64,000 bases of DNA, taken from NCBI GenBank assembly GCA_025201805.1, contig MU619239.1:335010-399009 (forward strand). The letters run 5' to 3'. Position numbers and translations under genes: made by a program. A model generated the notes under the pieces. That model was given only the letters and a program-made list of their open reading frames with translations. It did not search any database and was not told where the DNA came from. Origin of the DNA: Parasitella parasitica NRRL 2501 (taxonomy: Eukaryota > Fungi > Mucoromycota). Of the stretch, positions 28,885-34,514 are shown in pieces; the first letter of the stretch is position 1, and each line of letters starts with the position of its first letter.

Positions 28885-29165
28885 TATCGTATAGTGTCAA
28901 GAGACCTTTGACAATACGACAGAAAGAAAAAAAATTAGATCTCTAGACAATCAATCAGAAAGGTCACAGGTACAGACTGCTCTTTATGTAAATAATACTC
29001 GCATATTTTTAATGAGTTTCAGTACTTGCTTAGGTTCATAGCTACCAAGCCATATAAAGATATAAATATTTTTTAGTGGCGAAGGCTATTGCCATGTTTT
29101 TATGGTAGTTTATAGGTATCGCTTACATTTCTCAAGTAGCATTCTACAGTTAAAAATGTATTCAT

Positions 29166-29715
29166 TCTCCGACATTACAACGGCCCCCCAATGGCTTCAT
29201 TTTGGATCGATTCGACACAAAACAATGTTTTCTCGATGATTACTCAAAATTTCTTATAGTTAGCATCCATATCTCATTAATGATCATAGATACTATATTT
29301 GATTTTGTATTTAGTGGTACTATTAGTTTATTATTTTGGTATCAAAAATTGCATGTTATTTAGCGAAATTCGAAATCCCTTTTTTCGTCAATTCATCTAA
29401 ATTCGACTTACTTCGCTTTTAAAATAAACATTGAATGTGTTCACTGTGTCCAGGGGCTCATTTTGAATTAATGCTTGCCATAACAAAATATGTTACTTTT
29501 GGCCCTAAAAACTCAAAACACTGATTTTGATGGGTTGCCCATGAGGGGTACCTCATGGTTTTTGATCGAATTTTTCAAAATACCAAAAACTAGAGGAAAA
29601 GTGATAGCCAACAAGTGTGAAATGAGAGCAATTATTTGGCGTAATTTTCACCGCCGGATATGGCCTAGAAAGTGAACTAGCAGCATCTAGAAGTTCTCAA
29701 ATTATAACTGTTTTC
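29166..29715 (+). repeat. 550-bp direct repeat, copy 1 (upstream of DBP2)
   Basis: Matches 33331-33880 at constant offset 4165 with no mismatch seen by eye; the same 61-aa ORF appears in both copies. Confidence 0.95.
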
Positions 29716-30518
29716 CATTGATTGCAGCAGAAATGACACACGAAAGGCTGCCGAAAAACTATTAAAAAACAATATAGGAAGAAAATCACTTACGAAAATC
29801 TGATACAAGTATTTTACTTGGATAGGATTAGACGAGATACATATAATCAAATATAATGTTATTAAACCCCACACTTCTAGTTGATGGTGCCTGGAATCTT
29901 GATCTTTTGAAGCTCTAAATGCAACCGGTATCTCCTATTCTTTCGACTGTAAAAGTGTCCTATCTTAATATTGGCAATTCCAAATGAATGCTTGGATTTA
30001 TTATGTATCATTGATTTATTAAATTAAATATGCAGTAGAGTGCATACATCATTTCTCATGGTGCCCTTCAAGATATATTGAAAGATATTTATTCAGATGC
30101 GCTGGTTGCTGACACGCATGCTTTGATATATTAAGAATATATGCTACTTGTACAACCTGAAAAAACATGCTCTTTCATATAAAAATGAATCAGCATATGC
30201 GGGCTAAAAGGAAATTGGATCAAGGTTTTTCAATTCATCAAACTTGCACTCTGCGAATGTTAATCTCTACTTTTAATATATCATTCATTGCCTTTCTTTT
30301 CTTGAAAACCATAATGTTCTTGTTCTCTGATCGAATTTTGGCATGGGGCTACTTGGTGCCATTAACGGTTTACAATATCTCATACTATTGGATAAGATGC
30401 AAACAGTGGCTGAGACAAGGGATTAGAGGATATATAAAAAGTCTCCTTGAATATTTTTTTTTAATAATTTTCTTTATCCATTTTATTTATTTATTTTTTG
30501 GAAATACCTTTGAATAAA

Positions 30519-33052
30519 ATGTCTTCTTACTCTTCTTCATACCATCATTCTTCCTCTGGTGGAGGTGGATCTGGTGGCTACAGCAGTCGCGGCGGTAGCA
30601 GCAGCTATCGTGACAACAGAGAAACATCTCCTAGAAGATCCAGCAGAACGTAAGTTTATTTTGTATAAAATTTTTTTTCTGTTTCCTAATTAGCTCTGTT
30701 TCTATTGAAAAACCAACTAGTTCATCTAGTTATGATAATCATTCTCGTGGCGGTGAAGATCGCGGCTACTCTTCTTACCGTGGTGATGCCTCAAGAGGCA
30801 GCAGTCATGGCTATGGTGGCAGCTCTGACCGTGGCTATGGTGGGGGTAGCAGCAGCGGCGGCTACGGCGGAGGCAGTGGCTACGGTGGAGGCTCCAGCAA
30901 TAGCTATGGTGGCAGTGGAGGTTATAGTGGAGGTAGCAAGAGCTATGGCGGCAGTGGAGGTAGCAGTGGATATGGCCAATATCCTCAAGGCGGTGGCTCT
31001 ACCAATGGAGCTGGTCTTCAGGACATCAATTGGGATTTGGCTTCTTTACCCAAGTTTGAGAAGAACTTTTACACTGAACACCCTGACGTGGCTAATCGTT
31101 CTGAACAAGAAGTGAACGTTATCAGAGCTAAAGCCAGCATGAATGTTACAGGCCACAATGTACCCAAGCCTCTGAAGACGTTTGACGAAGCTAACTTCCC
31201 TTCGTACGTTATGGATGAATTAAAAACACTTGGTTTTGCTAGCCCTACTCCTATTCAATGTCAAGGTTGGCCTATGGCTTTAAGTGGTTGTGATGTTGTC
31301 GGTGTCGCCGAAACTGGTTCTGGCAAAACATTAGCTTACACCCTTCCTGCCATTGTTCATATTAATGCTCAGCCCTTATTACAACCTGGTGATGGACCCA
31401 TCGTTCTCGTTTTAGCTCCTACTAGAGAACTTGCTGTACAAATCCGTGGTGAATGTACAAAATTTGGTTCTACTTCTCGTATTAAGAGTACTTGTCTTTA
31501 CGGTGGTACTCCTCGTGGACCGCAAATTCGTGACCTTGCTCGTGGTGTTGAAATTTGTATTGCTACTCCTGGTCGTTTGATTGATATGCTCGAAGCTGGC
31601 AAGACAAACTTGAAACGTGTCACTTACCTTGTTCTTGATGAGGCTGATCGTATGCTTGACATGGGTTTCGAGCCTCAGATTAGGAAGATTATTAACCAAA
31701 TTCGCCCTGATCGTCAAACCCTCATGTGGTCTGCCACCTGGCCCAAGACTGTCGAGCGTTTAGCACAATCGTATCTTAAAGAATATATTCAAGTTACTGT
31801 CGGTTCTTTGTCTTTGAGTGCGTCTGAAAACGTTGCTCAGACTGTTGAAGTTTGCACTGAAGAAGAGAAGCGTGGTAAGCTCATTACTCAACTTGAGCGT
31901 ATTATGGAATCTCCTGAAGATGAACGAAAGACTATTATCTTCACTAGTACCAAGCGTACTGCTGATGACATTACCCGTTTTCTTCGTCAAGATGGATTCC
32001 CGGCTCTGGCTATTCATGGTGATAAGGAACAACGCGAACGTGATTGGGTCTTGAATCAATTCCGTTCAGGAGGACATCCTATTATGGTTGCAACTGATGT
32101 TGCTTCTCGTGGTATCAGTAAGTATTGCAGTTTTTTTTTACATTGATATTTGAACGAAAAGGAAAGAAGAATTTGATGAGGGGGCCACCCCTTTTTCACA
32201 ATTCTCGTAATTGCGCAAAATTATATGTGTATATCTCTTCCGTTTTGTATGGTAATCTCAACCTTATACAACACATCAACGTTTTACTTTCTCTTTCATT
32301 GCGAAAGGGAAACAAAGGCAGAGAATATCCTTTAAAAAAAAAAGATGGCATGTATCAGGTAGATTGTATCGAATAGTACATCAAAGAGTTCTTTTTTCTT
32401 TCTTTTCAAGGTAAGAAGAGTTAGAAAAAGCAAACGCAAGAACACAAAGCCAAACATTTTGATATTAAAAGCACCTCTTTTTCTATCTATTGTATCACAT
32501 TTGTTCTTGTCTCTTTGGTTATTATATCTCACAAACATCTCCTCTTTTTTTTTTGCTCATTATAATGGCGTTATTATGGAAATGGTTTTACATTTCTCTT
32601 GATAATCATTCGAATATTCGATTTTTTATGTCTCATGCTCATATTTCTTACTCTTCTATTGTTATTTTTGTATTTGCTTTTCCAAATGTATAGATGTCAA
32701 AGATGTCAAATTCGTTATTAATTATGACTTCCCCACAAACATCGAAGACTACGTTCATCGTGTTGGTCGTACTGGTCGTGGTGGTAACACTGGTCACTCT
32801 ATCACCTTCTTCACTGCTGAAAACGCCCGTCAAGCCCGTGAGTTAGTCGACATCCTTAACGAAACGAAACAATTCGTCGATCCTCGTCTTCAAATGTTGA
32901 TTCAACATCGTGGTGGAGGCGGTGGTGGCCGCGGTAGAGGAGGCTATCGTGGTGGCGGACGTGGTGGAGGAGGCTATCGTGGCGGACGCGGTGGAGGAGG
33001 GAGTTACGGTGGTGGATATGGTGGTGGCAATGGTGGAGGAAATAGATGGTAA
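30519..33052 (+). CDS. DBP2: DEAD-box RNA helicase Dbp2 (DDX5/DDX17 ortholog); exons 30519-30649, 30721-32117, 32694-33052
   Basis: '[13 protein letters not shown]', '[15 protein letters not shown]', 'AETGSGKT', 'PTRELA', '[18 protein letters not shown]', 'WSAT', '[10 protein letters not shown]'; Gly/Ser/Tyr-rich N-tail and RGG C-tail ending 'GGNRW'. Confidence 0.97.
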
Positions 33053-33330
33053 TTCTGCTTTTTTCCTCTTATCCATTTCATCATTGTTTTCGACTACTTT
33101 CTAGACTTTTATCCCTATTTAATTTTCTTCCACATGTTAAATATAAATAATCTGCTATCGCTTTTTCTTTGCTTTTTTTTTATTTAAATAAAACACTCTA
33201 CTCATGAACTTGCATCTGCAATAGGTTCTCTTTTAAAAATTGTTGTTCGTGGAATGCAACGGCTTTTACACTACAATGAATCCTTTTTTGTTTTGGTAAA
33301 GCATTACAGTGGGTTGAAAAATGCATTCAC

Positions 33331-33880
33331 TCTCCGACATTACAACGGCCCCCCAATGGCTTCATTTTGGATCGATTCGACACAAAACAATGTTTTCTCG
33401 ATGATTACTCAAAATTTCTTATAGTTAGCATCCATATCTCATTAATGATCATAGATACTATATTTGATTTTGTATTTAGTGGTACTATTAGTTTATTATT
33501 TTGGTATCAAAAATTGCATGTTATTTAGCGAAATTCGAAATCCCTTTTTTCGTCAATTCATCTAAATTCGACTTACTTCGCTTTTAAAATAAACATTGAA
33601 TGTGTTCACTGTGTCCAGGGGCTCATTTTGAATTAATGCTTGCCATAACAAAATATGTTACTTTTGGCCCTAAAAACTCAAAACACTGATTTTGATGGGT
33701 TGCCCATGAGGGGTACCTCATGGTTTTTGATCGAATTTTTCAAAATACCAAAAACTAGAGGAAAAGTGATAGCCAACAAGTGTGAAATGAGAGCAATTAT
33801 TTGGCGTAATTTTCACCGCCGGATATGGCCTAGAAAGTGAACTAGCAGCATCTAGAAGTTCTCAAATTATAACTGTTTTC
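33331..33880 (+). repeat. 550-bp direct repeat, copy 2 (downstream of DBP2)
   Basis: Identical by eye to 29166-29715, same orientation. Confidence 0.95.
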
Positions 33881-34514
33881 TACTGATCGCAATGATGAAT
33901 ACAAACCACTAACAGACTAGAAAACTAAAATAGTGTCAAATATGATTCAAATGACTCAGATGTAATGGTAATGAATTCAAAGCGATTGGCTTCAGAACCT
34001 GCAATTTTAATTTTTTGACGGTTTAAGCGCACTTATAGTAACCTTAAAAACTTCTTGGCGTGAGTTTCATGTAGTTGTATTGCTTTGATATCGGGTACCT
34101 CAATTGTTTTTTTGTGTACATAGATATTGCTTCTCATATTTAATAATTTGTCAAATTTCATAGGTTTCTTCGGGATATAATAGCAACAATAGTAAATAAT
34201 CCAGGAACCTGTACTTGATATGCCACGGAAAATGCTGCTTGACTGTTTAGGTGAAATTGAACTAATTCGGTATATTCATTAAATAGTAGTATTCCAGACT
34301 GTCTCAATGTCAGTCATATTGCTGTATATCTGGCACTTTTATGTGCCCTTTCTGTATCGTTTCGTTCTTTGGCGGAAGCAAGACAAAGGTCTACGACGCT
34401 GAGTATAAAAGCCCACATATTGATAGATTTGTGTTGCAGGGGGGGATCCGGGCTGTATGACCAATAATGCTCAATTAAATAGTTTTCTACAGTTCTTTTG
34501 TTCGCTTCTACAAC

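Follow-up and report, generated by a model that had tools for sequence, protein, structure and literature searches.

Direct repeats on either side of a fungal DBP2 gene are neighboring copies of an old dispersed family, probably homogenized by gene conversion

Concerted evolution via ectopic gene conversion has been described for Ty/long terminal repeat (LTR) copies, for copies of short interspersed elements and for segmental duplications. At the GAP1 locus of yeast, the gene and an origin lie between two direct solo LTRs (YKRCdelta11/12), whose recombination produces either a GAP1 circle or a deletion (PMC10667340). Here we describe a locus of related architecture in a stretch of 64,000 nucleotides of Parasitella parasitica NRRL 2501 (C3:335010-399009 in a 32.8-Mb assembly of 450 contigs), which as a whole is referred to as the window and supplies the position numbers used throughout. 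Within it, a single complete gene for a DBP2/DDX5-type DEAD-box helicase (DBP2) stands between two copies of a repeat that point in the same direction and have identical interiors. We consider it probable, though well short of certain, that these are two neighboring copies of an old dispersed family whose interior has been homogenized by intrachromosomal gene conversion.

Identical interiors and diverged edges

An ungapped comparison at an offset of 4165 gives a single identical run of 550 bp on the same strand (29166-29715 = 33331-33880), on which MAFFT and a repeat finder concur. The preliminary description of this DNA, made from the letters alone, had reported two identical 550-bp stretches in the same orientation, and the exact comparison confirms both its coordinates and the offset. 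With sensitive BLAST of one spacer against the other, the repeat is alignable over 575 bp (29152-29726 versus 33317-33891) at 99.1% identity. In a scan of the entire window, this pair is the sole direct or inverted repeat of at least 80 nt. The two copies, including their diverged edges, are as follows:

29138-29726, forward strand: left repeat copy (identical core 29166-29715; diverged edges 29138-29165 and 29716-29726)
33303-33891, forward strand: right repeat copy (identical core 33331-33880; diverged edges 33303-33330 and 33881-33891)

The five mismatches within the 575-bp repeat (at 29159, 29165, 29716, 29718 and 29723) are T/C transitions in every case, and all of them are confined to the outer 14 bp of the left end and the outer 11 bp of the right end. 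At these places the left copy reads T, T, C, T and T, and the right copy (33324, 33330, 33881, 33883 and 33888) reads C, C, T, C and C. If mismatches were uniformly distributed, the probability that all five fall within the outermost 25 of the 575 bp would be ~1.6e-7; that of five random mismatches being transitions throughout is ~0.004. Leftward of the 575-bp repeat, another ~15-20 bp contain short blocks common to both copies, with two indels between them. Beyond the 575 bp, the comparison of the two spacers reveals no colinear match, the next best BLAST match having an E value of 0.14. A search of the flanks outside the core of both copies, using the profile of the repeat family described below, also gave no match, and the presence of longer family members at both sites is not supported. 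The earlier proposal had homology persisting past the core; the matches claimed further out ('ggtatctcctatt' and others) are not significant, and the far-flank homology is chance.

In this pair, the interior has 0/550 differences and the edges 5/25, while members of the family are 60-70% alike. Gene conversion best fits this pattern, because a perfect interior is bounded on both sides by transition-only divergence, then by indels, and then by no homology at all. Since conversion tracts need homology on both sides, the last bases of a repeat would escape conversion and drift. A non-crossover event would be implied, because a single crossover cannot homogenize both outer copies with each keeping its own edges. 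Of the two routes by which the preliminary description had an old pair homogenized, 'gene conversion or crossover', the first is therefore the better fit and the second, as a single event, appears inadequate. Fresh transposition is not indicated, as the repeat has neither a terminal inverted repeat (TIR) nor a target-site duplication (TSD) nor an open reading frame (ORF).

A dispersed non-coding family

In BLAST searches of the genome with the repeat and with each whole spacer, close matches are found at these two places only. Many identical copies elsewhere, which the preliminary description had named among the findings that would count against it, are not seen; other copies of the family are diverged. 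The repeat represents a complete unit of an old family that is non-coding, diverged and dispersed, and to which we assign no class; it is not a private local duplication. The family was recognized around a short motif:

29541-29557, forward strand: conserved 17-nt hairpin motif ATGAGGGGTACCTCATG, with a second copy at 33706-33722

The hairpin is identical in the Mucor lusitanicus homologue of the repeat, and with at most one mismatch it occurs 8 times genome-wide, versus 0 for the reversed control. A sequence-only family model, R1, covers ~200 nt around the motif. A genome scan with R1 gave at least 149 matches in the 32.8 Mb, a lower bound, as 150 of the 14,174 first-look candidates were scored. 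The R1 match in the left copy spans 29457-29650, and examples elsewhere are C1:350295-350495, C81:116862-117062 and C43:54249-54433. Once oriented, family members are 60-70% identical to one another along ~520-620 bp. When 22 members other than the DBP2 pair are combined into a profile, it aligns to 29190-29673 of the left copy and 33318-33838 of the right copy (E ~1e-30). The left end of the family (…ATTCAAnCTCCGAC…) coincides with the left end of the repeat, most members stop near its right end, and both DBP2-flanking copies begin and finish at the same family positions. As for coding capacity, tblastx and six-frame reading meet stops in every frame of the repeat, both here and in the M. lusitanicus homologue; a Pfam search with its three small ORFs gave no match, and neither did tRNA and Rfam scans of the region.

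The known classes of mobile element were considered in turn. The 575-bp unit starts with TG (29156) and ends with CA (29726), within ...TTGCA, but an alignment of 25 family members that covers both ends shows no conservation of these bases, and an LTR pair was rejected. An LTR retrotransposon was rejected as well, the interior being the intron-containing DBP2 gene with no gag or pol. No TSD of 5-10 bp was detected at either copy across a range of boundary choices, 4-bp duplications lying outside the scan. For all boundary choices, the first 60 nt compared with the reverse complement of the last 60 nt score below the 95th percentile of shuffles, which disposes of a miniature inverted-repeat or other TIR element, and 27000-36500 contains no inverted repeats of 30 nt or longer. 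A canonical Helitron was rejected because the hairpin lies ~170 nt from the 3' end and the unit ends in ...TTGCA; the identical core does start with TC, as the 5' end of a canonical Helitron would, yet the family homology runs further left. The statement in the preliminary description that LTR ends, TIR, TSD and transposase are all missing was well founded, each having been searched for and none found (TSDs at 5 bp or more).

Other nearby copies of the family are also far above the family norm of identity, but their pairs are inverted. The following were recorded:

C28 pair: 14 kb apart, 91% identical
C7 arms: C7:382186-383365 (L042:1396-2575), 551 nt, 96%
C34 pair: L061:1450-2720, 98.5%
C124 pair: L062:1141-5703, 99.1%
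C26 pair: L065/L066, 99.9%
C17 pair: L063/L064, 89.6%
C5 pair: C5:250268-258748, 97%

Family units are often found within inverted pairs of this sort, which have arms of 456-1744 nt that are 90-99.9% identical, with spacers of 78 nt to 12 kb. Their outer ends vary from pair to pair, and no TSD was seen. In four younger inverted pairs neither common ends nor a TSD was found, and old copies may have lost their TSDs; a Pfam search with the ORFs inside one inverted pair revealed no transposase. We note separately that C5:244500-264499 and C67:58000-77999 share a segmental duplication of several kb at 90-97% identity, which includes an inverted 1.3-kb pair on C5 and an apparent isochorismatase-like ORF.

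The enclosed gene, its neighbors and the age of the copies

Spliced gene models were queried exon by exon rather than as joined proteins. The genes at the locus are as follows:

30519-33050, forward strand: DBP2/DDX5-type DEAD-box helicase gene (exons ~30519-30649, 30721-32117 and 32694-33050, from frame analysis)
27690-28884, reverse strand: 5' part of a THUMP-domain (TAN1-like) gene (ATG at 28884; THUMP match on exon 27893-28057; lower bound approximate)
34515-35263, forward strand: ATP23 (peptidase M76) gene, downstream of the right copy (Pfam Peptidase_M76; 90% identical to Mucor ATP23)

DBP2 runs from the ATG at 30519 to the stop at 33050, carries Pfam DEAD and Helicase_C domains, and encodes a protein 88-94% identical to Mucor DBP2 proteins. 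The gene is single-copy in the assembly, where the next DEAD-box paralogue is 43% identical. Together with its upstream and downstream DNA, DBP2 is the only gene between the two repeat copies; here the preliminary description, which had the repeats enclosing exactly this one complete gene, agrees with both the frame analysis and Pfam. The left copy lies ~800 bp upstream of the DBP2 ATG, within the 1.6-kb spacer between DBP2 and the divergent THUMP/TAN1-like gene on its left. The right copy begins ~265 bp past the DBP2 stop, within the 1464-bp spacer between DBP2 and ATP23.

Two further features of the gene region may be recorded. The intron at 32118-32693 (~575 nt) interrupts the coding sequence for the C-terminal helicase domain, with ...RGI on one side and NVKDV... 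on the other, and recalls the long autoregulatory intron of yeast DBP2. An ATG ORF of 116 amino acids at 30167-30517, which stops just upstream of the DBP2 start codon, is probably not a gene.

Comparison with relatives bears on the age of each copy. A family unit of M. lusitanicus (L012:6432-6713) lies upstream of DBP2 at a distance of ~1.3 kb, has the same orientation as the left copy, and can be aligned with 29449-29730 at 63% identity over 289 bp (E 3e-19); the DBP2 DNA of the two genomes is 75% identical. From ~150 copies per 33 Mb, we estimate the coincidence of an independent insertion in the same orientation within 1.5 kb upstream of DBP2 in M. lusitanicus at well under 5%. Because such an insertion at the matching place is unlikely, the left copy is probably orthologous and ancient, predating the split from M. 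lusitanicus.

On the other side of the gene, the adjacency of DBP2 and ATP23 is kept in relatives. The alignable blocks of the two genes are 187 bp apart in M. lusitanicus (323 bp between the annotated genes) and 193 bp apart in the metagenome relative L005, compared with the spacer of 1464 bp here. Among the relatives examined, none has a family unit in the DBP2-ATP23 spacer and none has a direct repeat around DBP2. With these short, repeat-free spacers, the right copy is probably the younger of the two. In the upstream direction, a THUMP/TAN1-like gene adjoins DBP2 in this genome only, and not in M. lusitanicus, Pilaira anomala, M. mucedo or two metagenome relatives, which suggests a rearrangement of the DNA upstream of DBP2 that contains the left repeat. 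Of the TAN1-DBP2-ATP23 synteny that had been proposed for comparison among related fungi, the DBP2-ATP23 half is thus conserved and the TAN1 half is peculiar to this genome. Attempts to reach closer relatives through ATP23 returned no protein more than 90% identical in a protein search, distant relatives only (41-55%) in a metagenome scan, and no match in an exact look-up of the exon-1 ORF among Logan contigs.

Explanations weighed, and known systems

The sequence of events that we favor would be as follows. One family copy would have been present in the TAN1-DBP2 spacer since ancient times, and a second would have arrived later in the DBP2-ATP23 spacer, either as a local copy of the first or by an insertion of its own; for two independent family insertions to fall within 4 kb of each other, the chance is a few per cent at the copy number detected. 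With the copies separated by 4.2 kb and pointing the same way, non-crossover recombination would overwrite the interior of one with that of the other and would leave 550 identical bases, whereas the outermost bases of the unit, too near the end of homology for conversion, would retain their older divergence. What the assemblies show, as given above, is the pattern of identity, the membership in the family, the numbers of copies and how the locus looks in relatives; from these we infer the mechanism of conversion, its recency and its direction.

Several points weigh against gene conversion. The perfect identity rests on one assembly, and the diverged edges total only ~25-45 bp, a small sample. 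Recombination between strongly diverged copies is inefficient, so the pair must either have been kept similar by recurrent conversion or have started out identical. The DBP2-ATP23 spacers of L016 and Pilaira, in which the repeat is absent, are 1.0-1.4 kb long, which makes spacer length a weak argument for a derived right copy. In addition, the relatives compared are distant (coding DNA 75-83% identical, spacers unalignable), and none shows a pre-conversion state.

An unlikely alternative, and the best of those considered, is that the right copy was made from the left very recently in a single step, by transposition in trans or by templated break repair and with no conversion; the similarity at the edges would then come from the mechanism or from the target. 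The absence of any difference in 550 bp is consistent with such an event, as is the fact that the two copies are each other's sole close relatives in the genome and that the repeat boundaries coincide with the family unit; DNA elements, moreover, often hop locally. A fresh copy, however, is expected to be identical to its very ends, and the termini here differ by 5 transitions and two indels, with neither TSD nor TIR. Chance microhomology of 12/14 and 8/11 at a random target is improbable, and chance mismatches are not expected to be transitions throughout (~0.004 for five).

Slightly less likely again is an artifact of assembly or polishing, in which the copies really differ, or one of them is absent, or a tandem array has been collapsed, and the consensus has made them identical. 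Reliance on a single assembly of 450 contigs favors this explanation, and so does the fact that shared 31-mers cannot separate two identical interiors from one. Against it, 0.99 of the 31-mers sampled from 28600-34500 are present in six DNA runs (five studies), although these runs, all stored as contigs, are possible sources of this DNA and not independent support. Moreover, the diverged edges of each copy tie its core to unique flanks, as is not expected from misjoining or gap filling, and the region has no N runs or breaks. The edges therefore argue against gross misassembly, and polishing may have erased a few real differences in the interior.

The consequences of the arrangement can be considered apart from its origin. 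In principle the pair could delete DBP2, pop out a 4165-bp circle or expand in tandem, since any direct repeat of 550 bp can recombine. Because DBP2 is single-copy, deletion products should be selected against. It seems very improbable that repeat-DBP2-repeat acts as an active cassette, shedding DBP2 circles or short tandem arrays at a measurable rate as the mycelium grows and making the dosage of a growth-linked RNA helicase variable among the nuclei of a coenocytic fungus; were it so, the perfect identity of the repeats would be the trace of such traffic. We give marginally less credence still to a selected copy-number device, in which the arrangement would be kept because recombination yields DBP2 in circular form or in tandem arrays and so aids growth under some conditions, a role comparable to that of the GAP1 circle in yeast. 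Such a device would draw on 550 bp of perfect direct homology around a whole gene and the DNA on both sides of it, and it has a precedent in the LTRs that flank GAP1 and its origin (PMC10667340). No relative examined has repeats around DBP2, however, and near-identical neighboring copies of the family at several unrelated loci show the pattern to be generic. The arrangement is best seen as a by-product rather than a device. Least credible of all is the view that purifying selection preserves the identity because the non-coding element has a function, for instance as a regulatory block or as an RNA gene in two copies. In its favor, several blocks and the 17-nt hairpin have been conserved in both this genome and M. 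lusitanicus. Selection, however, would not give 0/550 differences when family members are 60-70% alike, and the repeat has no Rfam or tRNA match, all its frames are closed, and at least 149 scattered copies exist.

In sum, we read the locus as a real and ordinary case of concerted evolution between two neighboring copies of a dispersed repeat. Close copies of this kind keep each other identical and at the same time create a potential substrate for deletion or duplication around a gene. Their diverged edges could serve as natural barcodes for telling apart, in any set of reads, the unrearranged parental locus, a deletion and the junction of a circle or tandem array. The pair also exposes an unclassified, hairpin-bearing, non-coding family of at least 149 copies that is common to M. 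lusitanicus, and the repeated near-identity of its nearby copies is relevant to genome instability and annotation in Mucorales.

Among described elements, the non-autonomous Helentron types (HINE, DINE-1; PMC4067079) resemble the family in being non-coding and abundant, in lacking a TSD and in having a conserved short palindrome. Their hairpin lies ~11 nt from the 3' end, compared with ~170 nt here, and, unlike them, the family has neither a conserved 5' TC/3' CTRR or T-rich terminus nor inverted repeats in subterminal position; the likeness may serve as a lead only.

Like the GAP1 locus, the DBP2 locus has a single complete gene bracketed by two direct repeats of a few hundred bp, which would provide the same substrate for pop-out or deletion. 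The repeats at GAP1 are transposon-derived LTRs, whereas those here are not LTRs, having no conserved TG..CA and no TSD. GAP1 encodes a nutrient permease, whereas the gene enclosed here is a single-copy housekeeping helicase. Unlike the characterized cases of concerted evolution, conversion at DBP2 is deduced from a pattern in one assembly. That pattern is the one seen in concerted evolution of linked repeats: copies near each other resemble one another much more closely than distant family members do, their interiors are identical, and only the ends of homology remain divergent.

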